Positions 10,483-50,995 of a DNA stretch of 64,000 bases are shown here, in pieces. Each line of letters begins with the position of its first letter. The stretch's first letter is position 1. The notes under the pieces were generated by a model. It was not told the origin of the DNA. It saw nothing but the letters and a program-made list of their open reading frames with translations, and ran no database searches. The stretch is from Obrimoposthia wandeli (lineage: Eukaryota). The position numbers and the translations under genes were made by a program. The stretch is from the NCBI GenBank assembly GCA_977020255.1, contig CDROCS010000882.1, positions 1 through 64,000 on the forward strand, in the 5' to 3' direction.

Positions 10483-10833
10483 TACCCAAACCATTTTAAG
10501 ATGTAGTTTCAGCGCTAAGCTAGAAAATCGCGCTGTACGAAGACAATGGTTACTCCCTTACCAAGTGCTGCAACACTTTTTTGCTCCCGGTAAAAGCTAA
10601 GGTCATACATCCGTGTATGCACAGCTGATATGGTTTTCTAGCTTAGCTCCTTTCGGGCAAGGGGATAAAGGGGCATCTGTGGCGTTATTGATTTCGATAA
10701 TGGAACAACCATTCTCGGCTCTGGCATCCTGCTTCGCCCTACCTTCACCATCCATGGCTTCGTCTTCAATCAATGCCTTGGTGCTAACCCTTTATCGACT
10801 TGCCCAATCCTACATATTCAAGTTGCTTGGGTA
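10483..10833 (-). mobile_element. ERIC-like MITE family 1, copy A (351 bp, two internal inserted modules)
   Basis: Terminal inverted repeats TACCCAAACCATTTTAAGATGTAG / CTACATATTCAAGTTGCTTGGGTA with TA on both sides; colinear in reverse with the copy at 59051. Confidence 0.9.
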
Positions 10834-10879
10834 TATATTCATTTTATAGTCAGTAGATAATAAACTGAAATTATAAAAA

Positions 10880-11335
10880 TTAAGCACGGCTTTCGATATA
10901 GCTTTGATAATCAGGAATGGATTTTTCATAGCTTTTATCAAAAAATGGAGAGTTTATAATAAAGTCTGCCGTGGCTTGGTTACACGCGACAGGAATATTC
11001 CAGACTGCAGCTAAGCGCAGTAAGGCTTTTACGTCAGGGTCATGAGGTTGAGCTTCTAAAGGATCCCAGAAAAAAATCAGCATATCAATTTTCTGTTCGG
11101 TGATAAGAGCACCTATTTGTTGATCTCCACCTAATGGACCGCTAATCAATTTATTTATTGTTAACGAGGTGTTGTTACTGAGTAGGTTGCCGGTTGTACC
11201 GGTAGCAAAAAGCTTATGAGTAGATAATTTGTCAGCATAGCGTTGACACCAAGCAAGTAAGTTCGCTTTCATATTATCATGGGCAACTAATGCGATAGAT
11301 TTAAGTTCGGTCGCGATAACGTCTTTGTATTGCAT
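10880..11335 (-). CDS. mgsA: Methylglyoxal synthase
   Basis: [24 protein letters not shown] and [12 protein letters not shown] motifs. Confidence 0.96.
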
Positions 11336-11899
11336 ATATTTCCTTTGAATTTTTAGTTGAGCATTGCTGCCGCTTGTGTTGCCTTAGGTGATTAATGTTT
11401 CAGTACTCAAATAATGACTTCATAACGCTTATAATTTTAATCATTAGGGGCCAATTTTAAGCAATATCATAAGCCGCTGTATTAACATTGATAAAACAGC
11501 AGACTAAAAATGATTATAACAAGCGTTAAACTATGAATAACATAGCATTATTCTCATTTTATACTGACACAGCCAGTATAAGGCTTTCAACAACTTATTT
11601 ATCTGTCTAATAACTATCCTATATTTGTAACCGTCATCGTCATTTTGTTAAAGTCATGCTCTGGTTGCCATAAAAGGCAGTAAATGATTGAACGATCTTA
11701 GAATGCTGAAAGCGGATCATATGAAAATATTGAGTTAACACTGTTTATAAAAAGGTAGTGACATGAATATGAGTATGTTGATTTTACTGAGTTGTAAAAT
11801 AACGACTCGCTGATATATTCTGATGCTAAGTCATTTGTCAGTAAAGATTTTTCAGGTATGCTGTTGTTATAATAAGATCATAAAAAACATGAGGGATTT

Positions 11900-12940
11900 A
11901 TGTTAAGTACAGAAACAACACAGACGGTTAAAGGCTTCGCTTTAGTGCTCAGTGATGACAGTGAATTAAAACCTTCTCAGCGTGTAATGCTTATTGAAAA
12001 AAAGCTACCCGCGCTTAAACCGGGACAAGTTCTCGTTAGAATGTTAGCTGCACCTGTCAATCCCTCTGATTTGGTGTATTTATTAGGAAAATATGGCCTA
12101 GCTCCTCAAGAAGGAGCTTTTGTTGGCTTTGAAGGCTGTGGCATTGTCGAACAAGCTAATGCGGGTCTTTATGGCAAATGGTTAAAAGGTAAGCGCGTTG
12201 CTATATCAGCGCAACCGGGCATTGATGGTGTTTGGGCTGAATATGCAATAACAAAAGCTAATTACTGTTTACCCGTTCGCAAAGAGTTAAGTGATGAACA
12301 AGCAGCAACCATAATTGTAAACCCTTGTACGTCTGTTTGTTTGGTTGAGCGTGCTATAACACTTGGCAGCAAAGCTATTGTCATTAATGCAGCGGCAAGC
12401 CAAGTAGGCAAGGGGGCTATTCGGTACGCGAAACTCAAGGGCATTAAAACGATCGCGACTGTGCGCAGTGAAGCTAATGTTGAGGTGTTAATAGCATTAG
12501 GAGCCGATTATGTTTTTTTGACTACAGAGCATGATTTTGACAAATCTTTAAAGCATTGTGCGCGAAAAATACAAGCCAATGTTTTATTAGATGCAGTCGC
12601 CGCCGAAGACACTCCACGTTTATTAAAGGCGATGCCTAATGGTTCTACCGCTTTGGTATATGGTCGATTGACTGAAACTCATGATCCGTTGGGTGGTCTA
12701 TTTAATGTTGCTGACGTGATTTTCCGTGATATTAAAATAGAAGGCTTTTGGCTGGCTAAATACATAGGTGATGCCTCTGCGCTGCAAGTACTAGCACTAA
12801 GTTCAAAAGTTCAGAAACTGTTTGCCCAAGGAATTTTTAAAACAGATATTTACGCGAGTGTTGGTTTTGATGATTTCCCACAAGCGCTAGATCATTATGC
12901 GCGGCATAAAAGTGACGGTAAAGTGATACTAAAATACTAA
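11900..12940 (+). CDS. MDR-family NAD(P)H-dependent oxidoreductase (quinone/enoyl reductase-like)
   Basis: APVNPSD, GFEGCG, AAASQVG nucleotide-binding motif and C-terminal GKVIL. Confidence 0.85.
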   Translation: MLSTETTQTVKGFALVLSDDSELKPSQRVMLIEKKLPALKPGQVLVRMLAAPVNPSDLVYLLGKYGLAPQEGAFVGFEGCGIVEQANAGLYGKWLKGKRVAISAQPGIDGVWAEYAITKANYCLPVRKELSDEQAATIIVNPCTSVCLVERAITLGSKAIVINAAASQVGKGAIRYAKLKGIKTIATVRSEANVEVLIALGADYVFLTTEHDFDKSLKHCARKIQANVLLDAVAAEDTPRLLKAMPNGSTALVYGRLTETHDPLGGLFNVADVIFRDIKIEGFWLAKYIGDASALQVLALSSKVQKLFAQGIFKTDIYASVGFDDFPQALDHYARHKSDGKVILKY

Positions 12941-12966
12941 AATACTAAAATACTAAAATATTAAAA
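12927..12966 (+). repeat. 8-bp tandem repeat (TACTAAAA)x4 plus one imperfect unit
   Basis: Read directly; overlaps the MDR stop codon and fills the gap to the convergent gene. Confidence 0.95.
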
Positions 12967-12968
12967 CA

Positions 12969-13712
12969 TTAGAAGTGATACTTGTGCTTTAGCTGCTGGT
13001 ATTCCGTACTGGCTTTAAACTCTCTCATCGCTTGATTAAATGCCTTCATGTTGGCATTGTTTTTAAAGGCAACTCGGTATGGACTTAATGGGAAAATATA
13101 ATGAAATGCGATGTCATTTTCTTCTAAATTGCTTTGGTGTTTGTCAAAATAGTAGAGAAATATTTTAATATCCATTACCAAAATATCGACTCGGCCTAGT
13201 AGCAATAGCTCTAGTTGTTTTTTTTGGTTGGCGACCTGAATAAACATGGGACTGCCCGCTGTTGTTCGTGAAAATTCATCACCTAGCACTTTATCAGCAA
13301 GTTGAAATGAAGCAATGGAGTAGTCAGCCATATCAGAGATGCTATTAAGTGTTATTGCATCTTTTTTTAGTGAAATGGCAACATTTTGATAATTAATGTA
13401 ATTTTCGCTTAAGTTGTTGTTGTGAGGAAACATTTGTTTGTTAACGGTAATAACGGCATCAATTTCAGGTAACTCGAGCATCTTTTCTGAACGGCCATAA
13501 GGTATAAAAACAAACTCAGGGGCTTTATCAATATTATTTAGTACCTGCTGGATTAATTCTAATTCGAAACCAGAGCGGCTTTCTTCAATAGCATAGGGGG
13601 GTTTAGAAAGACCAACCACAACTTTAAATGTGGCTTTAGCAAAACCCGTGGTAGAAAAAACACTGATAATAATGAAAAAAAGAATATTTATTGGCATAGA
13701 ATGTTTTATCAC
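12969..13712 (-). CDS. Periplasmic substrate-binding protein (family 3-like), stand-alone
   Basis: Signal peptide; KPPY, GFELEL and GRVDILVMD motifs. Confidence 0.8.
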   Translation of the reverse strand: MIKHSMPINILFFIIISVFSTTGFAKATFKVVVGLSKPPYAIEESRSGFELELIQQVLNNIDKAPEFVFIPYGRSEKMLELPEIDAVITVNKQMFPHNNNLSENYINYQNVAISLKKDAITLNSISDMADYSIASFQLADKVLGDEFSRTTAGSPMFIQVANQKKQLELLLLGRVDILVMDIKIFLYYFDKHQSNLEENDIAFHYIFPLSPYRVAFKNNANMKAFNQAMREFKASTEYQQLKHKYHF

Positions 13713-13732
13713 AACGTTACTTAAGTGCTTTA

Positions 13733-14203
13733 TTATTCCTTGATAATATGAGCATAAGTAGCTTGTAGCGATAGCGCAAGGTCACTTGGCGACAATTCAA
13801 TTTCTAAACCTCGTTTACCACCACTAACAAATAAGGTATTGAGCATTTCTGCACGCTTATCTACTAGGGTGACCAGAGGTTTTTTTTGCCCAAGAGGACT
13901 CACCCCACCAAGTACATATCCGGTAGAATTTTGTACTTTGTTAATCTCGGCCATTTTTATTTTTTTTGCTTTGAGCGCCTTGGCGAGTTTTTTCAAATTA
14001 AGCTTCTCTTGCGCAGGAATAATAGCTACGGCTAAGTAGCTATTATCAACGTCCACCACTAGGGTTTTAAAAACTAACTCAGCACTGACATTGAGTTTAT
14101 CAATAGCCTCTAGGCCAAATGACTTACAATTAACATCATGCTGATACTGGTGTAATTTATACGGTATCGCTAATTTATCTAATTGTTCAACTGCAGGTGT
14201 CAT
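13733..14203 (-). CDS. ybaK: Cys-tRNA(Pro) deacylase
   Basis: MTPA start, VFKTL, TGYVLGGVSPLGQKK and SGGKRGLEIEL. Confidence 0.95.
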   Translation of the reverse strand: MTPAVEQLDKLAIPYKLHQYQHDVNCKSFGLEAIDKLNVSAELVFKTLVVDVDNSYLAVAIIPAQEKLNLKKLAKALKAKKIKMAEINKVQNSTGYVLGGVSPLGQKKPLVTLVDKRAEMLNTLFVSGGKRGLEIELSPSDLALSLQATYAHIIKE

Positions 14204-14313
14204 ATTGCGGCCTTAACTCATTTTTAAGTCTGTACTTCGCTAAATTATCTACAGCTTGATACTATTAATTAATGCTTTGCAAGCGTTCGTCGTAGTAACC
14301 CTTTTATGGCGGG

Positions 14314-14925
14314 TTATTCAGTGGCTAAGTGGTTGCTGATGTCACTGGATAATAAGGTCATTGCTTGACGCATTTGTTGCACAGCATGCGGATAACCATC
14401 GACTGTAAGTGCTACCATCAATTTAAAATGGTGTTTTTTTAACACATGAGGCATTTTTCTCTCTTGTAACCAATAGCTACCCGCAAGTATGACTTGTGAT
14501 TGATGGGTGGCATGAAATGCGGTTACTTCAACTAGAAGCTCTGTATCGAAGGTTTGCCTACTTGGCATGGCTGCAATGACATAATGATGGCGCTGATCTA
14601 CGGTATTTAAATCCTGAGTTAAAGTGCGGACAATACTAGTTTGTAAGGTTTCTGCCCACATATGAAAGTTAGAATAGTGTAATTGATGATCAGACAGCTG
14701 TAAAACTAACCCAGGTTGTTTTAAATAGTCAGGTAACTCCAATACGTTAACGGTAATGGTTGGAGTGTTTGTATTTTTTATAATACGGGCACTATTTTTA
14801 TTGCTGACGCTGGTATTAAGTGTCGGGCTATTCAGTAAATAGTATTGCGTTTTTGGTGTATTGTTCGACGTACACGCACTCAAGAGGATAATTGATAAAC
14901 TAAATAGGCTTAACGCTCGTTTCAT
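14314..14925 (-). CDS. pqiC: PqiC-family outer-membrane lipoprotein
   Basis: Lipobox LSAC, YYLL, LPDYL and WAE motifs; last gene of the pqi operon. Confidence 0.88.
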   Translation of the reverse strand: MKRALSLFSLSIILLSACTSNNTPKTQYYLLNSPTLNTSVSNKNSARIIKNTNTPTITVNVLELPDYLKQPGLVLQLSDHQLHYSNFHMWAETLQTSIVRTLTQDLNTVDQRHHYVIAAMPSRQTFDTELLVEVTAFHATHQSQVILAGSYWLQERKMPHVLKKHHFKLMVALTVDGYPHAVQQMRQAMTLLSSDISNHLATE

Positions 14926-16583
14926 TACTGTGCTCCATTACGTTTTGTTGGCATTGGCTCAGTGCTGTCACCATCATTAAATACCAAGCTATTAGGTTTG
15001 TGTTTAAGCTGATTGAGCAGAGGTTTTAATTCATTCATAGTTGCTGTTAATGTGTTTAGTGTCGTGCGCAGGTCCTCATAACCAGTAGAACCAGACGATA
15101 AATCTTGAGTTAAACTATTAATGCCTTGTAAGGTTTTTTTCAGCTCTGCGCTAAGGTGCTGTTGCTCAACTTGGCTAAGTAGGCCCTCAAGATTTTGGCT
15201 TACACCTTGTAGCTCTTTTGCCGTTTGCGTTATTTCTAACATCAGTTGATTAGCATTATTACTTAAATTGTTAAGTGGAATATTATTTAGCTTATCCATG
15301 AACTGTTCAGCTTTCGCGGTGATTTGTGAAAAGTCATCGCTGCTAGTTGGAATAATAGGAAACTGATCATATTGTTCAATAACACTCACGGGTTGATCTA
15401 GGTTATGTTGTAAATCAACATACAGGCTGCCGGTTAAAATATTTCCTGTGCGTAATACGGCTTTTAAACCGTGTTTTATCCAATAAATATTTTGTTTAGA
15501 CATAATATCTTTGCCATTACTATCATCAGGTAAACCGACACGTCCGGGTTGCAAACTGATTAATACGGGAATTTTAAAATCTTCTTTTGTTAGGGTGTTT
15601 TTACTTAATGTCAGCGCCATATTGGTTGATTTAACTTTACCTATTTGTACGCCTCGATATTCAACAGGTGCGCCGATAGAAAGTCCTCTGATAGAGTCAC
15701 TAACGAGAACAACAAATTCGATAGAATGACGGTATCTTTCATCATCGGCGGCATCGTAACTCTCATAAATATCAAAATACGAACGTTCGCCAATTTTTTC
15801 GCCAACGCCCATACCTTCTGGAATACCAAAAGTGACGCCATTGGTCAGCATCGTTTCTAAATTACCGGTTTTTATAGAGATGCCGTCAGCATTTAAGTCA
15901 AATTGCAAACCACTAACATCCCAAAATTTGGTGTTACTCGTGATTAATTGATGATAAGGCGCTTTGATAAAAGCATTATAATAAACAACGCGCTCTTCAA
16001 AATTGAAATATATATCTTCGAACTGACCAACGGTTAATCCTTTATAAATAATGGGATCTCCCTTGGAATATGCGAACTGATCATTGCTATTAAGGGTGAC
16101 ATGTAGCCCTGGCGTGCCAACGGCGGTAACCGGAGGTGCATCTAAGGCTTCAAATTGATAACGCTCAGCATTGTTTTTTCCTGGTGATATCTCAATATAT
16201 ACCCCTGATATTAACGTACTGAGTCCAGATACTCCGGTATGTGATATTTGTGGAGAAACGACCCAAAACATACTATCAGTTACTAAGAAGTGCTCTGCCG
16301 TTTTCTTAATTTTTGCGGTAACAATAACACCGTCACCTTTATTGTTGAGCTCAATTTGGCTGATTTCACCAATATCTACATTACGTGATTTTATTTTGGT
16401 TTTTCCAGCTTCCATACCTTCAGCGGTAGAAAAATGAATTGAAATTTCTGTGCCTTCATTACTCCACTGATAATAAAGCATCCAACAGCCAATAAAAACG
16501 GCGATTAGAGGAACAAACCAAATGGTTGATACGCTTTTAACAGGTTTTATTGTCGCGTTCTCAGCGGGTTTATCATTGTTCAT
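14925..16583 (-). CDS. pqiB: Multi-MCE-domain intermembrane transport protein PqiB
   Basis: Three MCE-like repeats (AEGMEAGKT, GDPIIYKG, GAPVEYRG), single N-terminal TM. Confidence 0.93.
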   Translation of the reverse strand: MNNDKPAENATIKPVKSVSTIWFVPLIAVFIGCWMLYYQWSNEGTEISIHFSTAEGMEAGKTKIKSRNVDIGEISQIELNNKGDGVIVTAKIKKTAEHFLVTDSMFWVVSPQISHTGVSGLSTLISGVYIEISPGKNNAERYQFEALDAPPVTAVGTPGLHVTLNSNDQFAYSKGDPIIYKGLTVGQFEDIYFNFEERVVYYNAFIKAPYHQLITSNTKFWDVSGLQFDLNADGISIKTGNLETMLTNGVTFGIPEGMGVGEKIGERSYFDIYESYDAADDERYRHSIEFVVLVSDSIRGLSIGAPVEYRGVQIGKVKSTNMALTLSKNTLTKEDFKIPVLISLQPGRVGLPDDSNGKDIMSKQNIYWIKHGLKAVLRTGNILTGSLYVDLQHNLDQPVSVIEQYDQFPIIPTSSDDFSQITAKAEQFMDKLNNIPLNNLSNNANQLMLEITQTAKELQGVSQNLEGLLSQVEQQHLSAELKKTLQGINSLTQDLSSGSTGYEDLRTTLNTLTATMNELKPLLNQLKHKPNSLVFNDGDSTEPMPTKRNGAQ

Positions 16584-17751
16584 TATTTTTATTTTTCCAA
16601 ATCAACTGAGGTTCAAAACTCATTGCGGCGAGCATAGTGGCAACTACAACGCCTGAAAACGCTAACGTTGCAGCGCCTGGGGTTATACTCATTGTTGGTC
16701 CAAGTTGTATTAAGCTAGCTAGTACAATAACAACGAAAACATCTATCATTGACCAACGACCGACAAATTCAGCCAGACGATACCATTTTACTCTTTCTAA
16801 GCTTAATCTATCACTTTGTTTTTGAACACTATAATTTAGCCAAGCCAATACCAGTATCTTAGCTACTGGCACGACAACACTGGCAACAAAAATAATTGCA
16901 GCAATAGGGTAGGAGCCCAAATGCCAAAGTAATATAACGCCGCCTATAATCGTGCTTGGGTCGTCTTGCCCAAAGAGTCGAGTAGACATAATGGGGTACA
17001 TATTCGCAGGAATATATAAAATTACTGCGGTGATCAGTAGTGCCCAGGTTTTTTGTACGCTCATGAGGTGTGTTGCAGGATCTTCTTGAGCAATTTTGTG
17101 CTTGCTTTCTTCTATCTCAATATTATGTGCCTTTTCAATCTCGGCTAATAACTGATACAGCTGGCGTTTGTCTATATGTAAAACAACCAATGTCATCGAT
17201 AGTGCGAACAAAGTAAAAGCGTAAAAAGATAAGCCGAGTGCAATGTCAGCCATCGACATAATTTTTATTAAGCTGACTAAAGCGCCGATTAAAAATATTT
17301 CTACCATGCTCCAGGGGAGTAGTTTAAAAATCATGGCTAAAACACGTCGACCATTTTTTGGATACAAACCTTTATTCATTGGAATGAGTAAATAAAGCAC
17401 TGACACTAGAACAACACTAGGAATAGCAAAAATAGTCAGTAATTCAATCAAGGCTAGAATATGATAATTATTATCAATTAAGATAAAAAAAGTATTGATA
17501 ACATCAAAATGGTTTTCTAAACCATTGCTGCTAAATGACAAAAAGCTAAAAGGTAAAGAAGCCAATAAAAATATTAGCGCGGTAATAGCAAAGGCTATAA
17601 TTCTTTCATTGGCATTTTTATGTTTGGCACTCAAAGTGTAACCACAGCGAGGGCACTGTGCTTTTTGATTTTCTTTTAACTGAGGCAAGTTAATGGTCAG
17701 CCCACATTCATGGCACTGAACTTCAACGTGATGTTCTTCGATGTTTGGCAA
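16573..17751 (-). CDS. pqiA: Paraquat-inducible protein A (two PqiA domains)
   Basis: CHEC/CPRC zinc motif, PWSMVEIF and GRWSMIDVF. Confidence 0.92.
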   Translation of the reverse strand: MPNIEEHHVEVQCHECGLTINLPQLKENQKAQCPRCGYTLSAKHKNANERIIAFAITALIFLLASLPFSFLSFSSNGLENHFDVINTFFILIDNNYHILALIELLTIFAIPSVVLVSVLYLLIPMNKGLYPKNGRRVLAMIFKLLPWSMVEIFLIGALVSLIKIMSMADIALGLSFYAFTLFALSMTLVVLHIDKRQLYQLLAEIEKAHNIEIEESKHKIAQEDPATHLMSVQKTWALLITAVILYIPANMYPIMSTRLFGQDDPSTIIGGVILLWHLGSYPIAAIIFVASVVVPVAKILVLAWLNYSVQKQSDRLSLERVKWYRLAEFVGRWSMIDVFVVIVLASLIQLGPTMSITPGAATLAFSGVVVATMLAAMSFEPQLIWKNKNNEQ

Positions 17752-17947
17752 ATTATCTTGGCACTGTAAATGCCGTCCTCAGTTTGAGTAAAAATTATTA
17801 TTTTAAATTAGCATATATTAACAATAATTTACTTAATAATTTTATTGAAATTAAAGAATTATCTTTAAAGAATTATACTATGAATGATTCTTTAATCGGA
17901 ATTGATTACAGGTCTTTAATTATGCTTTTTAATAAAGTCTTAAGTGC

Positions 17948-19761: not shown

Positions 19762-19823
19762 AATGTATTCCTTCTGACATAAATGTTAATAAATTTTTTT
19801 GCTAAATTTATCTATTGTTATTG

Positions 19824-19869
19824 TATATTCAAGTGGTTTGGGTATATATATTCAAGTGGTTTGGGTATA
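19824..19869 (+). repeat. Two direct 23-bp copies of the MITE family 1 terminal repeat, without an element body
   Basis: TATATTCAAGTGGTTTGGGTATA at 19824 and again at 19847; matches the right end of the copy at 59051. Confidence 0.92.
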
Positions 19870-20054
19870 AATGTATAGTGACTCTAGCATAGACTATAAA
19901 TAGTAACCTTAATTGTGCTAAAAGTAATCATTGCCAATCGCTAATACCATAATTAGTGAGTAGTTTATCTAATTTTTATGAATTACGATAGGTGATTATA
20001 CCTTAGTCTATGACCTGTAAAAGCTGCACATCTACTATATTTGATAGCGCAACA

Positions 20055-20334
20055 TACCCCAAGCCACTTGAAGATGCAGGATTGTGCAAGTTGAAAAAGG
20101 GTTAGTACCAAGGCATAGATTGAAGAAAAGGGTTGTTCCATTGTCGAAATCAATAACGCCACAGATGACCCTTTATCGCCTTGCTCAAAAGAAGATAAGC
20201 TAGAAAACCAGCTCCGCGTTGCATACACGGATGTATGTACTTAGCTTTTGTCTGGAACAGAAAAGCTGTGCATACACGGATGTATGACCTTAGCTTTTGT
20301 CTGGAACCGAATGCAGATCCAAGCGGTTTGGGTA
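20055..20334 (+). mobile_element. ERIC-like MITE family 1, copy B (two tandem TGCA-bounded modules)
   Basis: Left end TACCCCAAGCCACTTGAAGATGCAG, right end TCCAAGCGGTTTGGGTA-TA; internal 49-bp period. Confidence 0.88.
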
Positions 20335-20613
20335 TATTATTAAGGCTGTTGAAAAGCCCTATGTTTTCATCGATACCCTAAAAAGATAATATTTTACTGA
20401 CATTTAAGCACTTAAGACATTATCTTATTTAATTTATTCAAACGGTTTTTTAAATTTATATCATTAAATTTCTTTAGATACATTTGATTGTTGCTATACC
20501 TAGGTATAATGCAATTTATCGCTGTGAATTAAAACAGAGACTTAACACAGATAAACAGATAATTACTGAGTAATTAAACTGAGTGTAAAACCAGACCAAT
20601 CGGATTAAATAAT

Positions 20614-22347: not shown

Positions 22348-22355
22348 AATATTAA

Positions 22356-22566
22356 TACCAATTGAAATAACCAATTGATCATTTTAAGGCGGTTTAAATC
22401 TCCAATAACTGCGTTGCTTTCAATCACAATAGCTAGCTATTACTCGGCAATATGCTCCTGCATTGCGCTAATGACTTACCATTATCCATGTAAGAATCAA
22501 TCAAGCGTCTTATTCTTGAAAATTTACCCTCGCTTAACATTGATCGATAACTTATTACATTTGGTA
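22356..22566 (+). mobile_element. ERIC-like repeat family 2, copy 1 (about 211 bp)
   Basis: Imperfect terminal IRs TACCAATTGAAATAA...TTGATC / GATC...TTATTACATTTGGTA; colinear with 42260-42463. Confidence 0.82.
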
Positions 22567-22601
22567 TAACCCACCGGTTAAGCAACAATGAAAAGTGATA
22601 T

Positions 22602-32096: not shown

Positions 32097-32208
32097 GTAA
32101 GCGATAATAGTCATTTAAAAATGAAGTGAGTGAATTTTATCACTACTTCAAAGAGCATCCGAAGGCTAACAGGGCGAAGAGCTATTTTAAGTGTGTAATG
32201 CAGGTATA

Positions 32209-32454
32209 TACCCAAGCCACTTGAAGATGCAGGATTCAGCAAGTCGATAAAGGGTTAGCACCAAGGCATTGATTGATGAGAATGGTTGTTCCATTGTCGA
32301 AATCAATAACGCCGAGATGACCAGCATCGGCTTAACGAAAGAAACTAAGCTAGAAAACCAACTCAGCGTTGCAGCGCTTGATAAGGGAATAACCATTGTC
32401 TTCGTGCTGCGCCTTGATCTTCGAAGCAGGCAAATCTTCAAGTCGGACTAGTAT
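32209..32454 (+). mobile_element. ERIC-like MITE family 1, copy C (divergent right end)
   Basis: TA-TACCCAAGCCACTTGAAGATGCAG left end, body colinear with 59051; right end GCAAATCTTCAAGTCGGACTAGTA-TA is degenerate. Confidence 0.85.
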
Positions 32455-42259: not shown

Positions 42260-42463
42260 TACCAATTGAAATAAGCAATCGATCTTTTTAAGGCGGTTTA
42301 AATCGTCAATAACTGCGTTGCTTTCAATCACACACGCCCGCTATTACTCGGCAATATGCTCCTGCATTGCGCTAATGACTTACATATATGTAAGTCATTA
42401 GCGCCTTGTTCTTGAACAATTTATCCGCGCTTAAAATTGATCAATAACTTATGATCTTTGATA
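42260..42463 (+). mobile_element. ERIC-like repeat family 2, copy 2 (about 204 bp)
   Basis: Colinear with 22356-22566; central perfect 36-bp palindrome at 42369-42404. Confidence 0.82.
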
Positions 42464-42505: not shown

Positions 42506-43549
42506 TTACACTAAGCTAGTTAACATTTCTTCTGAATATGGCGTGATTTCCTCACCTTGACGTATTTTTTCAACATAGTCAGGGTTGGCAATAAATGGTC
42601 TGCCAATGGCGACTAAATCAAATTGCTCACGTTCAATCGCTGTGCTCGCAGTTTCAGCGGTATAACTACCTACACCCACCAAAGTCTTGTTGTAATGGGC
42701 TCTCACGTAGCTTGACGCTTTACCGCCAAGGTAATCAAACTCCATAGCATCGTCGAATATACCAATATGTAAAAATGCTAATGATCTTTTTTCTAGCGCT
42801 GGTAATAAATAATCGAATACTTCACGGTCTTTTGCATCAGTTGCCATATTGAAATAGGCACCAGGTGATACTCTTAACGCGGTTCTTTCATTACCAATGC
42901 GCGCAATTATCGCGTCGACAACGGCTAATGGAAAACGTGACATATTTTCTGGCGTAACACCATATTCATCAGTACGTTGATTACTGCCGTAATGCAAAAA
43001 TTGATCAATAAGGTAGCCATTAGCGCCATGAATTTCTACGCCGTCAAAACCTGCTGCCATTGCATTTTCTGCTGCTTGCGCATAATCAGCAATTAAGCCT
43101 TCAATATCGGCTAGTGTGACAGGTTTTGGTACTTGATAAGTTAGCTCTCGCATTCTTGGCACACTACCTTCCACAGCTATCGCTGAGGGTGCTAACACAT
43201 CGCCTTGTTGGAAAAAGTGTGGATGAGCAACACGGCCCGTATGCCAAAGTTGAGCAAATATTTTGCCGCCATTTTCATGAACCTTAGTGGTTACTTGCTG
43301 CCAACCAGTAATTTGTTCAGGGCTAAAAATACCAGGAGTATTTGGGTAACCTTGACCGTCTGGGCGAATAATTACCGCTTCAGAAATAATTAAGCCTGCA
43401 TCTGCACGGCGTGCATAATATTCAGCCATGGCGGTGGTAGGAACTAAGTTTTCATCAGCCATACAACGGGTTAAAGGCGCCATTAATATACGGTTATTTA
43501 AAGTGATTGCATCATTTAAGGCATAAGGTTGGAATAAGTTTTCGGTCAT
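42506..43549 (-). CDS. nemA: Alkene reductase / N-ethylmaleimide reductase (Old Yellow Enzyme)
   Basis: MAPLTR, QLWHTGR, EIHGANGYLIDQF and IGRPFIANPD. Confidence 0.88.
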   Translation of the reverse strand: MTENLFQPYALNDAITLNNRILMAPLTRCMADENLVPTTAMAEYYARRADAGLIISEAVIIRPDGQGYPNTPGIFSPEQITGWQQVTTKVHENGGKIFAQLWHTGRVAHPHFFQQGDVLAPSAIAVEGSVPRMRELTYQVPKPVTLADIEGLIADYAQAAENAMAAGFDGVEIHGANGYLIDQFLHYGSNQRTDEYGVTPENMSRFPLAVVDAIIARIGNERTALRVSPGAYFNMATDAKDREVFDYLLPALEKRSLAFLHIGIFDDAMEFDYLGGKASSYVRAHYNKTLVGVGSYTAETASTAIEREQFDLVAIGRPFIANPDYVEKIRQGEEITPYSEEMLTSLV

Positions 43550-43563
43550 GACAATATCTCTTT

Positions 43564-43632
43564 CTTGAATATGCGTTCAAGATACTCTTATTTGAATGCC
43601 CGTTCAAGTATTATTTTGAACAAACATTCAAA
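43564..43632. promoter_or_regulatory. Three TTGAAY-N4-RTTCAA palindromes, putative TetR operators
   Basis: CTTGAAT-ATGC-GTTCAAG (43564), TTTGAAT-GCCC-GTTCAAG (43591) and TTTGAAC-AAAC-ATTCAAA (43615) in the divergent nemA/tetR spacer. Confidence 0.75.
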
Positions 43633-43698
43633 TAAGAGTATGATGCTACTATAGCGTGCTAGGGTTCGAACCGTGATAATAAGCAAAAGTGAAAAATT

Positions 43699-44280
43699 AT
43701 GAGAAATGCCGAGTTTGATAAAGAAGCTGTACTCAGAGCGGCCATGATCGCTTTTATGGACAAAGGTTACACAAAAACCAGTATGCAAGATTTGAAAATA
43801 GCGACGGGGTTACATCCCGGTTCTATTTATTGTGCTTTTGAAAATAAACGTGGTTTATTGTTAGCCGCATTAGGGCAATATCGCGCCGACAGAGTCGAAG
43901 AGTTTCAACATTTTTTTTCTGGAGAAGTATCCGCGTTAGCAGCGCTGAAAACTTACCTTGATCACATTGTGCAAGAGTGTATTAGTTGTGAAGCTGCCCA
44001 AGCGTGTTTATTAACGAAAGCATTAAATGAATTGGCAGAGCAAGATGATGAAGTTCAGTCGATATTGATAGATCACCTGTCTGATTGGCAAGCTTCGATT
44101 GCTGATATTTTTCAGCAAGCAATTACTAACAAAGAACTCACGGGTGAGCGCTCAGCTGAACAATTAGCACGATTTTTTATTATGGGCATTTACGGGCTAC
44201 GTACTTATGCTCAAACACATCCTGAAGCAGATATCATGCATGAACTCGCGACACAATTATTTACTGATCTTTGTCTTTAG
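43699..44280 (+). CDS. TetR/AcrR-family regulator (NemR/ComR-like)
   Basis: N-terminal HTH (GYTKTSMQDL...PGSIYCAFENK); divergent from the alkene reductase. Confidence 0.9.
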   Translation: MRNAEFDKEAVLRAAMIAFMDKGYTKTSMQDLKIATGLHPGSIYCAFENKRGLLLAALGQYRADRVEEFQHFFSGEVSALAALKTYLDHIVQECISCEAAQACLLTKALNELAEQDDEVQSILIDHLSDWQASIADIFQQAITNKELTGERSAEQLARFFIMGIYGLRTYAQTHPEADIMHELATQLFTDLCL

Positions 44281-44402
44281 CTTCAATCGCCTTTTTAAAG
44301 AACGGTCATAATGTAAATAACGCTCACAATGTAAAAATGCCAATAACATTCAGTGTTACTGGCATGCTATTGGCAATTTCCGTCATTTGCTAAAAAAACA
44401 GC

Positions 44403-45227
44403 TTAACTTTCACGTTTATACATCAAGGTTGCGAAAATAAGTAAATTAATAATGAACCAGATATCTTTAATGATGAAGTGACCTGTTACCGTGAGTATGG
44501 TGTCGCTAGATATGGTTGCAGGCCAGCTTAGTAAGAAGGTTTGTGTCACGGCAAATACTGCACCAGACATTAAAACTGCCGGTATTAGTAATTGTCGCTT
44601 AAATATCGCTAACCCAAGCAATGTCATCGCAATGAGATCGTAAACACCGATAAAATTAGAAGTGGTTTGCAGATCCCAAACACTGTACATCCAGGACATT
44701 AGCGGCGAAGTACTGACTAAGCCTTCAATCCCTTTTGCTTCAATCAATGTAAACTTCATACCACCAATCCAAAGTAGTACCAGTATTACCGGAAAAGCAT
44801 TGAGCCAAATGGCTTTTTTTGTGTCTAAATAAGGTTTGCTTAGAAAGATACCAATGACCAATAGCGAGAAATACTTAATCACGCCTTGTCCTGCCCCAAT
44901 GGCTGGAAAACCACCTAATGATTTAATCCACATGCTGCTACCAAGTAACGGTAATAGTGCCACAATGCTAATGAAGATGAGAAAAACACCAAGTTTTTCT
45001 CTAAGTTCAATACGGTTAATAGCGAGAACAGCCCATAGCGCTGCAATTATGAAGGCTACAGCAGAAAGGCTATTGAAAATAGTACTGGGAAGTAAGTTGC
45101 TGATGCCATAAAAATCGGTGGTCATGGCAATTTGGCTATGATGTCCAATGAGTAAAGAGCTGAGTCCTAATAGTCCTGTTGAGATGGCAAGCAACGTTAA
45201 TAAAGCGGTAAAGTGTAATTTTTTCAT
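44403..45227 (-). CDS. DUF417/YkgB (RclC-like) inner-membrane protein
   Basis: WIGGMKF, EAKGIEGLV, SPLMSWMY and FIIKD motifs. ATG 45227 preferred over the 45338 ORF start. Confidence 0.75.
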   Translation of the reverse strand: MKKLHFTALLTLLAISTGLLGLSSLLIGHHSQIAMTTDFYGISNLLPSTIFNSLSAVAFIIAALWAVLAINRIELREKLGVFLIFISIVALLPLLGSSMWIKSLGGFPAIGAGQGVIKYFSLLVIGIFLSKPYLDTKKAIWLNAFPVILVLLWIGGMKFTLIEAKGIEGLVSTSPLMSWMYSVWDLQTTSNFIGVYDLIAMTLLGLAIFKRQLLIPAVLMSGAVFAVTQTFLLSWPATISSDTILTVTGHFIIKDIWFIINLLIFATLMYKRES

Positions 45228-45354
45228 TGAAAGATCTTTTGTAAGTTGAATCATAATGTGAAATATAAAGTTGACTAGGTTGCCACTGTTTACAGTAATC
45301 AGTCGACGATATCGTGAGAACACTGCAAAAGACCTCATAAATACTTTAACAAAA

Positions 45355-45369
45355 ATGAATTCGTATGCA
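45355..45369. promoter_or_regulatory. Operator-like site matching 23800-23829
   Basis: ATGAATTCGTATGCA, one mismatch to ATGAATACGTATGCA; about 110 bp before the GH13 start. Confidence 0.6.
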
Positions 45370-45479
45370 GTTGGTAAGGCTGCAATTAACTGTGTACTCT
45401 CAAAATCTGTCGTGGTTGTCGCTCAAGTCTGATTTTTCACTATATTTTCAGATGAGCCCGTAACTTTTAGGGTGCTTAA

Positions 45480-47534
45480 ATGCCTTGTTATTTATCTAAA
45501 TTATCTAGAAAGAATTCTTGGAAGTTTGTTGTAAGCAGTTTACTGCTAACGAGCTTTATAACTGCTTGTAGTGCTGAAAATGAACCGGTAGCTAAGGCCA
45601 CTGATTTAAACAAGGGACAGCCAAGTCTAATTCAGCAAGCGAAAGATGAAAAATTTTCAGTTCAGCAAAACACTTTTGACGGTATTGCGGGTGATGTTGT
45701 TGGTGTTAATACTGGTGTTAGTGATGTGACAGCACAGGCTGGAAAACCTGTTGTCTATCAGGTGTTCACACGTTTGTTTGGCAATCAAAATACAACCAAT
45801 AAACCTTGGGGCACTATGACTGAAAACGGTGTTGGCAAGTTTAGTGATTTTACTGACACAGCACTTCAAGGGATTAAAGAATTGGGTGTCAGTCATATTT
45901 GGTATACCGGTGTACCACACCATGCTTTGATTGGAGATTATAGTACATTTGGTATTAGCAATGACGACCCTGATGTAGTGAAAGGCCGTGCCGGTTCGCC
46001 TTATGCTGTGAAAGATTATTATAGTGTTAACCCTGACTTAGCCGACAATCCTGCTCAACGAATGGCAGAATTTGAAACATTAATAGCAAGAACGCATCAA
46101 CAAGGCATGAAAGTGATTATTGACATTGTGCCGAATCATATCGCCCGTGATTATCAATCATTAGGTAAACCTGAAGGTGTACATGACTTTGGTGCTAATG
46201 ACGACCTAACCGTAGAGTTTTCAGCGGATAACGATTTTTATTATGTTGTGGGTCAAAGCTTTAAGGTGCCTAAAGCTGAACAAAGTAAATCAACGCCTAG
46301 CTATGCGCCATTAAATGGTGAAAAACATCCGTTAGCTGATGGCTTGTTTAATGAATCGCCCGCGAAATGGACCGGCAATGGTTCTCGGGCTGCACAACCT
46401 AATATTAATGACTGGTATGAAACCGTTAAAGTTAATTATGGTGTTAGGCCTGATGGCAGTTACGCTTTTGAGCGCTTGCCAGAAGCTTATCGTTTCAAAA
46501 ACTATCAAGCACATAATGAATTTTGGCATAATAAAAAAGTACCGAGTGCCTGGATAAAGTTTCGCGATATAACACAGTTTTGGCTCGAAAAAGGTGTCGA
46601 TGGTTTTCGTTATGATATGGCAGAAATGGTGCCTGTTGAATTTTGGAGTTATTTAAATTCATCAATAAAAATGACCAATAAAGATGCATTTATATTAGCC
46701 GAAGTTTATAACCCTAAGCAATATCGAGACTATATCCAGTTAGGAAAAATGGATTATTTATATGACAAAGTTGATTTTTATGATCGGCTAAAAGATATTA
46801 TGCAAGGCCATGGTAATACGGGTGATTTAGCTAATATACAGCAGCGATACAGTGATATTGAATCGCACTTAATGCACTTCTTAGAAAATCACGACGAGCA
46901 ACGCATTGCTAGTGAGGGCTTTGCAGGTAACGCAAAAAAAGCGAAGCCGGCGATGGTTGTTTCTGCGCTCATTAGTCGTTCGCCTACCATGATTTATTTT
47001 GCTCAAGAGTTGGGTGAAGATGGCAGTGAAGAAACGGGCTTTGGCGACCCATCTCGTACTACTATTTTCGATTATGCCGGTGTGCCGAGTCATCAACGCT
47101 GGATGAATGGTGGAAAATTCGATGGTGCAACATTATCAGATGACGAGCGCGATTTACGTGATTTTTATCAACGACTATTAACTATCTCGGCCGAAAACCC
47201 CGCGATGAATGGCCAATACGTTAGTTTGCATGACGATAATCGTAAAGCTTTAAGTGCTTATAATCACCAGCAATTTGCTTTTGCGCGTTGGCAAGGAGAA
47301 GAGAGATTAATTGTTGTCAGCAATTTCGATAGTGAACAGCGATATCAATACAGTTTACAAATACCAAAAACACTGGTTAAAACATGGCAATTACCCACGG
47401 GACAATATCACTTAAACGATTTGCTTTATGGCAAAAATAGCAGTTTAACGGTGAATAGCGATCACACAGCAAGCATTGAACTTGATATAGCGCCGCTTGG
47501 CTCGTATGTTTTTCAGTTGGCGGTAACTAAATAA
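45480..47534 (+). CDS. GH13 alpha-amylase-family lipoprotein
   Basis: Lipobox ITAC; IDIVPNH, DGFRYDMAE, LAEVY and FLENHDEQR catalytic regions. Confidence 0.92.
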   Translation: MPCYLSKLSRKNSWKFVVSSLLLTSFITACSAENEPVAKATDLNKGQPSLIQQAKDEKFSVQQNTFDGIAGDVVGVNTGVSDVTAQAGKPVVYQVFTRLFGNQNTTNKPWGTMTENGVGKFSDFTDTALQGIKELGVSHIWYTGVPHHALIGDYSTFGISNDDPDVVKGRAGSPYAVKDYYSVNPDLADNPAQRMAEFETLIARTHQQGMKVIIDIVPNHIARDYQSLGKPEGVHDFGANDDLTVEFSADNDFYYVVGQSFKVPKAEQSKSTPSYAPLNGEKHPLADGLFNESPAKWTGNGSRAAQPNINDWYETVKVNYGVRPDGSYAFERLPEAYRFKNYQAHNEFWHNKKVPSAWIKFRDITQFWLEKGVDGFRYDMAEMVPVEFWSYLNSSIKMTNKDAFILAEVYNPKQYRDYIQLGKMDYLYDKVDFYDRLKDIMQGHGNTGDLANIQQRYSDIESHLMHFLENHDEQRIASEGFAGNAKKAKPAMVVSALISRSPTMIYFAQELGEDGSEETGFGDPSRTTIFDYAGVPSHQRWMNGGKFDGATLSDDERDLRDFYQRLLTISAENPAMNGQYVSLHDDNRKALSAYNHQQFAFARWQGEERLIVVSNFDSEQRYQYSLQIPKTLVKTWQLPTGQYHLNDLLYGKNSSLTVNSDHTASIELDIAPLGSYVFQLAVTK

Positions 47535-50215
47535 TGATGAAAAAATATAAACGTACACTTAATCAGTTTTTTGATATCGGTAATCGAAATAACCATGTTT
47601 TTCATCGTAAGGTTAGCGTTTTACATAAAAGCTTAATGTTATGTAAAAGCTCATTTGTTGCTACTTTACTGCTCGTGACACTGAGCGGACAAGTCCTCGC
47701 TCAAGGCTATGCTGCTCAAAAAACTGTTACTCAGGAGCTACTGACTCAAGACTATGTTAGCCGAAATTATGTTGCTCATGAACTCATGGGGAACACACTA
47801 AAAGTAAAAACTAGCGGTGGAATAGTCGACATTAATGCCCTTAATCAATCGGCATTTGAAGTTCACTATCAACCAACAGGCTTAAAGCAGTTACCGTCGT
47901 TTGCGTTAGCGAAAAAAATAAGCGGCGTTAACGATAAAAAAGACAGCATGTTAACTGTTGTCGATTCAGCAAAGCAGTTAACGCTTAGCAGTGAATTACT
48001 AGTGGCAATTATTACAAAATCACCTTTTAGCATTCGCTATACAAAGCCTAATGGTGAGTATATAGCAGCGGAAGAACAAGGTTTATTGCTTACTGAGCCA
48101 GTGAGGGCTTCATTAACAAAAAACACAGCAAACATTAAAGCAAGCGACGTGGCTATAAGCGCAAATCCTGCTTTTAATTTAGGCTTTCGTTTTAAGCTGC
48201 AGCCACAAGAAAAAATAATGGGTGGTGGTCAGCGTGTGCTTGGCATGGACCGTCGTGGTCATAAAATGCCGCTATATAACCGTGCGCACTATGGTTATGA
48301 AAACGAGTCTAGTCAAATGTACTATGGCTTGCCGGCGATTATGTCGAGTAACAAATACATCATTGTTTTTGATAATTCTGCCAATGGTGAATTAGATATC
48401 GCTGCCAGTGAAAAAAACATTGTGCAATTTAGCGCGATGGGCGGCCGAACCTCGTATTTGATAATCGTTGGTGAAAGCTATCCTAAGTTAATTGAAAATT
48501 TAGTCAGTGTTACGGGCAAGCAACCGCTACCTCCGCGTTGGGCGTTAGGTAATATTGCTAGTCGTTTTGGCTATCATAGTGAACAAGAAGCACGCAGCGT
48601 TGTACAAAAGTATCGCGACGAAGACTTCCCCCTTGATGCTATTGTTTTTGACCTCTATTGGTTTGGCCCTGATATAAAAGGGCACATGGGTAATTTAAAT
48701 TGGGATAATAAAGCGTTTCCAACCCCCGTTGATATGATCAAAGATTTTAAAGCACAAGGTGTGAATACCATTATGATCACCGAGCCTTTTATTTTAACGT
48801 CATCGAGTCAATGGCAAAGTGCGGTTGAAAATAATGCGCTAATGAAAAACCCATTAGGCCAAGCAGAAAAATTTGATTTTTATTTTGGTAATACCGGACT
48901 AGTTGATGTTTTTGAACCAAAAAGCCAAGACTGGTTTTGGCAATACTATCAAAAGCTTGCTAACCAAGGTGTGACCGGTTGGTGGGGCGATTTAGGAGAG
49001 CCTGAAGTGCATCCTGCTGATGCCTTGCATAACGTTGCTGGCAATAAGGTAACTGCAGATGAAGTTCATAATGCTTACGGCCATCAATGGGCTGAAATGC
49101 TTTATCAACGATTACGAAAATTTCAGCCTAACACACGTCCTTTTATTTTAATGCGCTCGGGGTTTATTGGCTCACAACGTTATGGCATGGTGCCTTGGAC
49201 TGGTGATGTTAGCCGCAGTTGGGCCGGTTTTAAGCCACAAGTTGAACTCGCTTTGCAAATGAGTTTACTTGGTTTGAGTTACACGCATTCTGATTTAGGT
49301 GGTTTTGCTGGCGATGGCCCTATAGATAAAGAGCTTTATATTCGTTGGCTACAATATGGTGTTTTTCAACCGGTATATCGTCCCCATGCACAAGAAAATG
49401 CTAAACCTGAGCCAATTTTTCATGATGTTGAAACTAAAGATATTCTTCGAGAGTATGTTAAATTACGCTATCGTTTAATGCCGTATATTTATTCGCTGAG
49501 TATAGAAAATAGCTTAACCGGCATGCCCATTATGCGCCCTATGTTTTTTGAGGACGAGAGCGAACTGAAACTCATTGATGAAAAAGACAGTTACTTTTAT
49601 GGTGACTCATTTTTAGTTACCCCCGTGACTGAGCAAGGTGCTGAAACGGTTAATGTTAATTTACCTAAAGGTACATGGTTTAATTTTTGGAGCGAGCAGC
49701 GTTATCAAGGTGAGCAAAACGTTACGATTGCAGCGCCTTTGGATCAAACGCCAGTGCTAGTGCGTGCGGGGGCTTTTATTCCCATGGTTGATAGCGTGCA
49801 ATCAACAAAAGATTACAATACTGAGCACTTGATCTTACATTATTACGCTGATACTTCGGTAAAATCATCCTCCTCTGTGATGTATAACGATGATGGACAA
49901 GACCCAAATTCTCTGACCAATGCTGATTATGAAAGCTTAACTTTTTCAGCAATTCAACGAGATGAAAAACTGTTGTTTGACTTACAACAACATGGTCAAT
50001 TTGTTAAAATGCCGATCACACGTCAATTGAGTTTAGTGATCCACAATTATCAAAATAATGCGGAAAACATAACCGTGGATAACAAACTGGTTAGGTTAGT
50101 AAATAGCAGAGAGCAATTTACTCAGCAGCCGCTAAGTGCTTGGTATGACGAAAGCAATAAACAATTGTTCATTAATACTGTTTGGCGAAAAAACATCAAA
50201 ATTACCATAGATTAA
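47534..50215 (+). CDS. GH31 alpha-glucosidase
   Basis: PPRWALG, DLYWF, WWGDLGEPE nucleophile region, WTGD and HSDLGGF; overlaps the GH13 stop. Confidence 0.92.
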   Translation: MMKKYKRTLNQFFDIGNRNNHVFHRKVSVLHKSLMLCKSSFVATLLLVTLSGQVLAQGYAAQKTVTQELLTQDYVSRNYVAHELMGNTLKVKTSGGIVDINALNQSAFEVHYQPTGLKQLPSFALAKKISGVNDKKDSMLTVVDSAKQLTLSSELLVAIITKSPFSIRYTKPNGEYIAAEEQGLLLTEPVRASLTKNTANIKASDVAISANPAFNLGFRFKLQPQEKIMGGGQRVLGMDRRGHKMPLYNRAHYGYENESSQMYYGLPAIMSSNKYIIVFDNSANGELDIAASEKNIVQFSAMGGRTSYLIIVGESYPKLIENLVSVTGKQPLPPRWALGNIASRFGYHSEQEARSVVQKYRDEDFPLDAIVFDLYWFGPDIKGHMGNLNWDNKAFPTPVDMIKDFKAQGVNTIMITEPFILTSSSQWQSAVENNALMKNPLGQAEKFDFYFGNTGLVDVFEPKSQDWFWQYYQKLANQGVTGWWGDLGEPEVHPADALHNVAGNKVTADEVHNAYGHQWAEMLYQRLRKFQPNTRPFILMRSGFIGSQRYGMVPWTGDVSRSWAGFKPQVELALQMSLLGLSYTHSDLGGFAGDGPIDKELYIRWLQYGVFQPVYRPHAQENAKPEPIFHDVETKDILREYVKLRYRLMPYIYSLSIENSLTGMPIMRPMFFEDESELKLIDEKDSYFYGDSFLVTPVTEQGAETVNVNLPKGTWFNFWSEQRYQGEQNVTIAAPLDQTPVLVRAGAFIPMVDSVQSTKDYNTEHLILHYYADTSVKSSSSVMYNDDGQDPNSLTNADYESLTFSAIQRDEKLLFDLQQHGQFVKMPITRQLSLVIHNYQNNAENITVDNKLVRLVNSREQFTQQPLSAWYDESNKQLFINTVWRKNIKITID

Positions 50216-50224
50216 TTAAGCTTT

Positions 50225-50257
50225 TAGACGAGTATTTAACTCATAAATACTCGTCTA
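50225..50257. terminator. Hairpin between convergent genes
   Basis: TAGACGAGTATTTA / TAAATACTCGTCTA 14-bp stem. Confidence 0.7.
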
Positions 50258-50310
50258 GCTAGCGCACCTTAATTCACCCTGCCTAAATTTGGGCGGCATG
50301 AGCTAAGCCA

Positions 50311-50583
50311 TTATTTATGTTGTGTCTTTTGCGGTAAAGAAAACTTGGCATAAATGGTGGTTGCGACACCGCCAACAAGCGCAAGCATAGCCAAACCAAA
50401 CATGGCATCACTTTGCCCTTTAAAAACTAATAGACTGACGCCTAATACAACAAAAAGTAAGCCAATGACGGCAAATACTTTTGGGTGAGAGGTGATCAAT
50501 CCTGACGATCTGGCCTTGCTCGTCGTTTTACTCTTAACATGAGTCGACGCTTTTCGTTTATGCTTATTGGCTGGCATGAGCAA
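50311..50583 (-). CDS. Small membrane protein (basic N-terminus, two TM helices)
   Basis: 90-aa ORF with two hydrophobic segments. Confidence 0.65.
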   Translation of the reverse strand: MLMPANKHKRKASTHVKSKTTSKARSSGLITSHPKVFAVIGLLFVVLGVSLLVFKGQSDAMFGLAMLALVGGVATTIYAKFSLPQKTQHK

Positions 50584-50747
50584 CTTCCTTTCTTAATGAA
50601 CGACATCAATCGAATAACGATGGTTGTTAATAATATAGCTGTTTATAATATTAAATGAAGTAAAAACAACTAATTATTAGCAATATATTGACGCTCATTT
50701 TATTAGCTCTTCACATGTTTTTTGCTTTATTGTTTCCCCAGCTTATA

Positions 50748-50995
50748 TACCCAAGCCACTTGAAGATTTGTGCAAGTTTAGCACCAAGGCATTGATTTGG
50801 TTGTTCCATTGTCGAAATCAATAACGCCGGAGATGACCCTTATCGCCTTGCCCGAAGGCTAGCTAGAAAACCAGCTCCGCGTTGCATACACGGATGTAAT
50901 GTGCAGCACTTGATAAGGGAATAACCATTGTCTTCGTGCTGCGCCTACCTGATTTCAGCTTAGCTCTGAAACTGCATATTCAAGTGGTTTGGGTA
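50748..50995 (+). mobile_element. ERIC-like MITE family 1, copy D (248 bp, one short TGCA-bounded module)
   Basis: TA-TACCCAAGCCACTTGAAGAT...ATATTCAAGTGGTTTGGGTA-TA. Confidence 0.9.

Follow-up and report, generated by a model that had tools for sequence, protein, structure and literature searches.

A two-hairpin cassette in the slots of a BOX-like modular MITE of Colwelliaceae, with a candidate role as a CsrA site

What are the short segments, bounded by TGCA and present none, one or two at a time, that interrupt a small repeated element at one fixed site in contig CDROCS010000882.1 of the Obrimoposthia wandeli assembly (GCA_977020255.1)? [quoted passage not shown] The segment is a cassette that folds into two covarying hairpins, is precisely present or absent in its slots, recurs in other elements and forms arrays. 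The explanation preferred overall, with moderate confidence, is that of a structured cassette residing in slots of the MITE, arrayed by slippage and having a candidate role as a binding site of CsrA.

The content of the window is bacterial DNA of Colwelliaceae (Cognaticolwellia-like), assembled as contig C882 of a eukaryotic host assembly of 1.35 Gb and 6,912 contigs. A taxon scan with the unit core, using one genome per species, gave matches in Colwelliaceae only (Cognaticolwellia aestuarii, C. mytili, and metagenome-assembled genomes (MAGs) of Colwellia and Cognaticolwellia) and in one Psychrobium MAG. The five MITE copies of the window are as follows.

10481–10835, minus strand: MITE copy A; slot m1 filled, one m2 cassette, m3 empty.
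About 20054–20336, plus strand: MITE copy B; left end decayed, m1 absent, two m2 cassettes, R1/R2 body deleted up to the right terminal repeat.
32205–32420, plus strand: MITE copy C; m2 slot empty (TGCA at 32370), right end decayed.
50744–50997, plus strand: MITE copy D; left part with internal deletions.
59047–59314, plus strand: MITE copy E; 268-bp short form, three slots all empty (TGCA at 59215).

The MITE starts with TATACCCAAGCC... and finishes with ...GGTTTGGGTATA, and in every complete copy the left terminal inverted repeat (TATACCCAAGCCACTTGAAG...) pairs with the right one (...CAAGTGGTTTGGGTATA). TA...TA bounds 42 of 45 copies, which fits a TA target duplication of the kind made by IS630/Tc1-type elements and a TATA-ended repeat alike. 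About 49 MITE cores (at most three mismatches; 184 candidates at first look) are found on bacterial contigs of the assembly, in dispersed elements of 230–560 bp that have unrelated flanks and are too short for a transposase gene.

Three optional slots interrupt the MITE: m1 after ATTGATTGAA, m2 at GCGT^TGCAGCAC and m3 at GATAAGG^GAATAACC. The segments in m1 and m3 are 48 nt each and the m2 unit is 49 nt; arrays form in slot m2 only. In copies C and E the m2 slot reads GCGTTGCAGC, with an uninterrupted GCGT-TGCA-GCAC. The slots of copies A, B and D hold the segments listed here, scored where bits are given with R1, a covariance model of the cassette.

10573–10621, minus strand: m2 cassette of copy A, 49 nt; a variant with an ACC linker and a CCGGGAG loop (37 bits).
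10717–10764, minus strand: optional segment m1 of copy A, 48 nt; motifs ACCATGGATGGT and GCAGGATGC, weakly folded.
20220–20268, plus strand: m2 cassette 1 of copy B, full 49 nt (77 bits).
20269–20311, plus strand: m2 cassette 2 of copy B, truncated to 43 nt and fused to the right terminal repeat (30 bits).
50883–50901, plus strand: m2 cassette remnant of copy D, 19 nt; hairpin 1 only.

TGCA stands at 10569 and 10618 in copy A, at 20220, 20269 and 20312 in copy B and at 50883 and 50902 in copy D. These positions and the series of zero, remnant, one and two modules had been given in the preliminary description, and they were confirmed in all five copies and at every position, as was the hairpin CATACA-CGGA-TGTATG, which pairs perfectly in A and B but imperfectly in D. 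The further claim that every module is closed by another TGCA holds for the first units of A and B, but not at 20312 in B, where the TGCA is that of the right terminal inverted repeat (CTGCAT.TTCAAG...). About 100 bp is missing in this copy between unit 2 and the terminal repeat, and the module of "period 43" is therefore a deletion product rather than a closed module. The remnant in D is interpreted as a full unit that has undergone internal deletion, because copy D groups with the cassette-bearing clade.

The two TGCA of a filled m2 slot differ in origin. The 5' TGCA belongs to the conserved cassette (TTGC-N), where it makes up the base of hairpin 1, while the 3' TGCA is the MITE's own; in copy A the latter occupies 10569–10572 and adjoins the cassette. 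At slots m1 and m3 the identity of the borders is just 1–2 nt. The TGCA is thus read as a repeat-phase overlap or microhomology and not as a target duplication. The proposal of a 4-bp TGCA duplication made on site-specific insertion is not supported, since the 5' TGCA is intrinsic to the cassette and the flanks elsewhere are other than TGCA.

The cassette consists, in order, of TTGC-N, hairpin 1 (UACA-NGGA-UGUA), the linker GUACUUAG, hairpin 2 and a CUG end. UACA-N-GGA-UGUA of hairpin 1 is invariant. Hairpin 2 has an 8-bp stem, a 2-nt bulge and the loop C-N-GGA, and the sequence of its stem covaries freely: AGCUUUUG/CAAAAAAGCU in some units stands against AGGUUUAG/CUAUAAACCU or AUGAUUUG/CAUAAAUCAU in others, with length, bulge and loop unchanged. 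An alignment (A2) of 30 m2-type cassettes, all distinct and from both MITE and non-MITE contexts, fits the two-hairpin structure in 95.2% of pairing cells, compared with 84.6% in shuffles and 24–48% in slid controls, and in 8 of its 16 pairs both partners change. Covariation was scored at 0.254 (against 0.072), and 0 of 500 shuffles attained this score. The module folds independently of the frame into two local hairpins, as seen in covariation and in folds of single units, and the 49-nt indel of the MITE coincides within one base with the conserved family unit (TTGC...CUG).

Three features point to one folded strand, most simply RNA. Of the 30 rows of A2, 28 retain a basal G.U pair in hairpin 1. 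The closing pair of hairpin 2 passes among units through GC..GC, GU..GC and GU..AC (C-G, U.G, U-A), which is an RNA-type compensatory path. The + strand folds better than the - strand, both for the unit (-13.3 vs -8.9 kcal/mol) and for a 561-nt copy (-219.8 vs -203.7 kcal/mol). The m2 and m3 cassettes share a design, in which a hairpin YNUACA-YGGA-UGUANR is followed by a short linker with UAG at its end and then by another hairpin whose loop bears GGA, and their stems differ through compensatory changes; judged by these sequences they are two subtypes of one two-hairpin design. It was also observed that hairpin 2 is similar in its 5' arm and loop (TTAGCTTTTGTCTGGAAC) to a subterminal segment of the MITE (CTTAGCTCTGAAAC), and that the deletion in copy B (20290–20336) joins both. 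This likeness hints either at a shared ancestry of cassette and frame or at similarity that drives deletions.

The cassette is a member of a small structured repeat family widespread in Colwelliaceae. By model R1, cassettes were detected in 46 of the 121 family genomes analysed, and the richest genome has at least 48. Intergenic mosaics of small GGA-loop hairpins are present in Colwellia MAGs, C. mytili, Psychrobium and other contigs of this assembly. A period-49 cassette doublet lies downstream of a gene in G005. In G017 a cassette is enclosed by inverted arms of 12–14 nt (CGTCATCCCGYACA ... TGATRCGGGATCTC) to form a 78-bp mini-element, which occurs in at least six places (L200 and L220–L224; G017:C1) with unrelated flanks and 89–99% identity between copies; it is among the smallest repeat units with a mobile appearance. 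A second MITE type with other ends has the m3 slot AAGG^GAATAACC, filled in G057 and empty in G123. The preliminary description had proposed to look for the unit outside MITEs, and it is indeed found there, in intergenic arrays and the mini-element, besides the second MITE type. Within the window one further case was noted.

42336–42395, minus strand: m3-type cassette in a different repeat, of the same type as L118; hairpin-1 loop mutated to TATA, hairpin 2 GCAGGAGCA loop intact.

Outside the MITE the cassette is flanked as TTGCC...CTGACC or, inside inverted arms, as TGCC...CTGTGAT, with no TGCA pair. The non-MITE variants read TGTAGG before hairpin 2 and the MITE variant reads TGTATG.

Within the MITE, the 16-mer core of the unit has 30 exact occurrences in the 1.35-Gb assembly, distributed over 16 elements and about 10 contigs. 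Because all 30 cores lie at one site of this MITE, the likeness of the units reflects homology and not chance. The m2 arrays have one to four exact cores, or up to about five units when decayed units are included, and zero units are also found; the same MITE with three units is present in G012 and G049. Neighbouring units are identical (a-a or b-b) in five of seven arrays, and decayed units lie beside intact ones. Both patterns indicate tandem duplication of units in situ.

Almost every combination of filled and empty m1, m2 and m3 slots is represented across six genomes. For example, G005 has m3 only, one copy in G002 has m1 only, and copies in C. aestuarii have none, m2, or m2 and m3. All five related genomes examined contain both ~268-bp and ~316-bp copies. 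Mixed, well-supported clades of 0-unit and 1-unit copies are found in C. aestuarii (100/98) and in MAG G002 (96/85), and the backbone tree requires at least 13 changes of state. At one site G109 has ~265 bp made up of mixed repeats, compared with 13–48 bp in three congeners; the gain is clear, its junction being too diverged for a footprint.

It is proposed that copy number in m2 would change through replication slippage or unequal recombination between tandem units, like that of boxB in BOX elements, and that whole units may be lost through microhomology between TGCA and TGCA, one TGCA being at the base of hairpin 1 and the other native to the MITE. The 0/remnant/1/2 series of the window would then represent paralogous copies at different stages and not a record of insertions. 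The stacking element within an element of the preliminary description is a fair account, since the unit is a discrete, self-folding cassette that is found outside the MITE as well and whose presence or absence at the slot is interleaved across species on the backbone tree; the arrays are more simply explained by tandem duplication.

A role for the cassette is suggested by its loops. In vitro selection (systematic evolution of ligands by exponential enrichment, SELEX) gave RUACARGGAUGU as the CsrA consensus, its GGA lying in the loop of a hairpin (PMC4347634). The invariant columns U6–U16 of A2 read UACA-N-GGAUGU, with a 4-nt loop closed by A-U, and match this consensus. GGA is also found in hairpin 2 and in both m1 motifs, and the 561-nt copy has 16 GGA on the + strand vs 4 on the - strand. 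The assembly has csrA genes on six of its bacterial contigs (C253, C506, C1295, C2171, C2834 and C3916), and the Rfam CsrB model has a weak, sub-threshold match to the cassette-type array L188 in G002 (E 9e-6). If the folded strand is RNA, namely the + strand of the MITE, the two GGA loops of each cassette would constitute a candidate CsrA/RsmA dimer site, and a transcribed MITE would add CsrA sites to its transcript in a number set by the length of the array. As the function of the cassette, this putative CsrA site is the likeliest proposal, with the chances rather against it. The wider proposal that the cassettes are portable candidate CsrA/RsmA-binding modules in MITEs and mini-elements, which, also through the growth of arrays, would plant tunable numbers of high-affinity sites in Colwelliaceae transcripts and form a mobile titration or recruitment layer beside canonical csrB, is doubtful on the present sequence comparisons. 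In the literature no publication was found that ties CsrA sites to dispersed repeats or to MITEs, and a 2024 review of MITEs makes no mention of CsrA.

Loci resembling canonical csrB were observed separately. L187 (G003:C47:12860-13188) and L186 (G004:C1:345214-345545) are sub-threshold matches to the Rfam CsrB model (E 7e-7 and 3e-10, respectively). Both have many AGGA hairpins and a terminator; a perfect TGTAAG-N6-CTTACA box lies upstream of L187 and a variant box belongs to L186. They are probably true csrB genes of these Colwelliaceae that fall below the gathering score of the family. One-strand tandem arrays of GGA-loop hairpins, placed between the end of a gene and a terminator, were seen at L188 (G002:C114:55413-55683) and L207 (G108:C4:17900-18800), one with five 51-nt units and the other with two ~250-nt units and 14 hairpins. 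The terminator-ended cassette-type arrays L169, L188 and L207 look sponge-like, and L188 and L207 draw on the same hairpin toolkit as the cassettes.

Several points weigh against the preferred explanation, some concerning the history of the slots and others the CsrA site. The cassette-bearing copies of this genome form one clade (99/92; 97/93 in a second tree), and the 0-unit copies form a shallow comb. The backbone tree of states was built on 268 columns, and gene conversion between copies could be the source of the interleaved states. In C. aestuarii the approximately unbiased (AU) test of a single clade is marginal (p-AU 0.048), for a group named post hoc. Slippage is read from the patterns of the arrays; the short-read contigs break at the MITE, and no length polymorphism at a single locus was visible in them. 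As regards function, the m1 segment has two GGA motifs and a fold that is not significant (z -0.5). With respect to the upstream gene, 34 elements are co-oriented and 19 opposed, a weak bias that is not significant with crude calls of open reading frames. No TGTAAG-N6-CTTACA (GacA/UvrY) box with up to two mismatches was found in the window, no promoter or terminator signal was found on the + strand of copy B, and a search of eleven loci, including two long MITE copies, against Rfam returned only a tRNA at E up to 1. In the non-MITE arrays L112, L115 and L168 the GGA hairpins are on both strands, which a DNA-level palindromic repeat fits as well as an RNA site does.

The single clade and the shallow, recently amplified comb are what would be expected if the segment were a plain minisatellite, that is, if a long ancestral MITE had carried the repeat, shorter forms had arisen by deletion or slippage and the unit had no role outside the MITE. 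Copies D and B and locus L064 are evident deletion derivatives, and the same slot is filled in a divergent subfamily (L113), so that presence may be ancestral. A single clade of module-bearing copies had been named in the preliminary description as the pattern speaking against a mobile unit; it is found within this genome, but in two other species the states are interleaved inside supported clades. The minisatellite also leaves aside that the indel equals the conserved family unit within one base and that the same design, with other stem sequences, exists outside the MITE in many genomes (the period-49 doublet, the 78-bp mini-element and the second MITE). It is largely refuted by these occurrences, whose flanks do not suggest decayed MITE copies, and it is considered improbable.

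The same low standing is given to an autonomous site-specific micro-element with a dedicated enzyme, which would insert at TGCA by cut-and-paste or copying and duplicate it and would build arrays by insertion into its own end. The lack of TGCA boundaries in other contexts, the position of the 5' TGCA inside the conserved cassette and the 1–2 nt of boundary identity at m1 and m3 all tell against such a mode of insertion, and the identity of neighbours in the arrays is typical of in-situ duplication, even though the precision with which fixed slots are filled or empty in several species, the sharing of the cassette by unrelated element types, the TGCA on both sides of the first unit and the many state changes on the backbone tree would suit it. 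The enzyme was sought among Y1 transposases (PF01797, Y1_Tnp), of which there are six matches in four of five relatives. Five of these loci (G001, G003 and G004) have zero or one CANGGATG motif within ~1.5 kb, the sixth match, in G002, being outside this check, and the cassette-rich G005, with 31 hairpin cores, has no Y1_Tnp match. The Y1/HUH transposase that the preliminary description had thought to look for beside the unit is thus missing beside cassettes at the five loci.

Very improbable is a repetitive extragenic palindromic (REP) or REPIN-type repeat mobilised by a REP-associated tyrosine transposase (RAYT; Y1/HUH), with the hairpins as DNA recognition sites and the GGA loops incidental: the small palindromic units, often in mosaics of alternating orientation downstream of genes (L112, L115, L168), resemble such repeats, whose palindromes carry a 5' GTAG or CGTC tag, and GTAG adjoins hairpin 2 in non-MITE variants, but in the MITE variant its place is taken by GTAT, the Y1_Tnp loci and G005 are as just described, and the conserved G.U wobble and the better fold of the + strand favour one strand.

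For the structured cassette arrayed by slippage, the closest known system, by likeness of working and with no claim of membership or expected sequence relationship, is the pneumococcal BOX. In BOX elements boxA and boxC enclose zero to many self-folding tandem boxB modules (Croucher et al., 2011, PMC3049150), and in S. suis that boxB is flanked by other end modules (PMC3049150). As in BOX, a MITE-like inverted-repeat frame surrounds an internal module (45 nt in BOX, 49 nt here) that is absent or arrayed, the module folds on itself with few contacts to the frame, and longer arrays vary more. Like boxB of S. suis, the cassette is found in MITEs with different ends. Unlike BOX, the present MITE has three slots and two cassette subtypes, the cassette occurs also outside any frame, and the phylum differs; unlike boxB as described, the loops carry a CsrA-type ACA-NGGA-UGU motif. 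BrickBuilt of Porphyromonas gingivalis is a minisatellite within a MITE, with a 23-nt unit (PMC4596501). It is similar in being an intergenic tandem repeat of short units, variable in number, between a leader and a tail with inverted ends, but its 23-nt unit is not described as a separately occurring structured cassette.

Other intergenic repeats share single traits with the present MITE, among them fixed internal insert sites in a TA-flanked MITE. ERIC (enterobacterial repetitive intergenic consensus) reportedly is an imperfectly palindromic, TA-flanked intergenic MITE with inserts of ~70 bp at specific internal sites, and its shorter forms are said to have arisen by deletions. Arrays of ERIC inserts are not known. 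Comparing the 268-bp form by blastn with 5,426 E. coli genomes yielded no match, and relatedness to ERIC proper was not recovered. The small dispersed repeats (SDR) of Nostoc, reportedly structured, 21–27 nt long, nested in MITEs and in their own copies and subject to compensatory changes, are alike in nesting and covariation and differ in being cyanobacterial and shorter, with another fold. In the small RNAs CsrB, RsmY and RsmZ, repeated GGA-loop hairpins sequester CsrA (Kulkarni et al., 2006, PMC1488887). The cassette resembles these RNAs in its intergenic density of GGA-loop hairpins (two GGA loops per cassette) and in growth by duplication of a hairpin module, whereas no GacA/UvrY box, promoter or terminator was found in the MITE. 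The finding is filed as a BOX-like modular MITE in a gammaproteobacterium, with a structured, well-supported cassette that circulates beyond its frame and bears a CsrA-type motif.

Further observations concern the bacterial source and its other repeats. A cyanobacterial origin (Nostoc SDR, Nezha MITE) had been considered on account of the AT-richness and the terminal inverted repeat, and was ruled out by the scan with the unit core, which gave Colwelliaceae and Psychrobium only. The genes flanking the copies have 72–82% identity to those of the nearest genomes in the collection, in which the insertions of copies A and B are absent. The locus was found in four runs of public reads, three of them estuary metagenomes with near-identical sequence; the contigs from these reads end at the MITE, and the number of units is unreadable from them. 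At 19822–19869 (+), 180 bp upstream of copy B, there are two tandem 23-bp copies of the right terminal repeat of the MITE without a body (solo ends). One of these copies is missing in contigs of two estuary metagenome runs (23 bases skipped at 19824), so that this duplication is polymorphic between populations. The host assembly contains several bacterial genomes, including a near-complete Colwelliaceae-like chromosome (C253, 4.68 Mb) that has a divergent subfamily of the MITE with an m3-type cassette bearing compensatory stem changes (L116). An unrelated repeat of ~215 bp at 22353–22572 has several matches in MAG G002 at ~95% identity, compared with 78–82% for the flanking genes, and is probably another MITE family, recently exchanged or conserved.

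Modular MITEs with a variable internal array are already known (BOX, BrickBuilt), and the purpose of the internal module has long been unclear. The covariation, the conserved G.U pair and the CsrA SELEX consensus in hairpin 1 offer a concrete hypothesis on the role of such a module that is testable at the bench. If it is true, a 49-nt unit that transposes and slips would allow a global post-transcriptional regulon to be rewired or buffered quickly, and the series of zero to five copies would be a natural dosage series. Should the CsrA reading fail, the cassette remains a clear example of a structured unit common to several unrelated small mobile elements, and as such it has implications for the assembly of REP-, BOX- and ERIC-type repeats.

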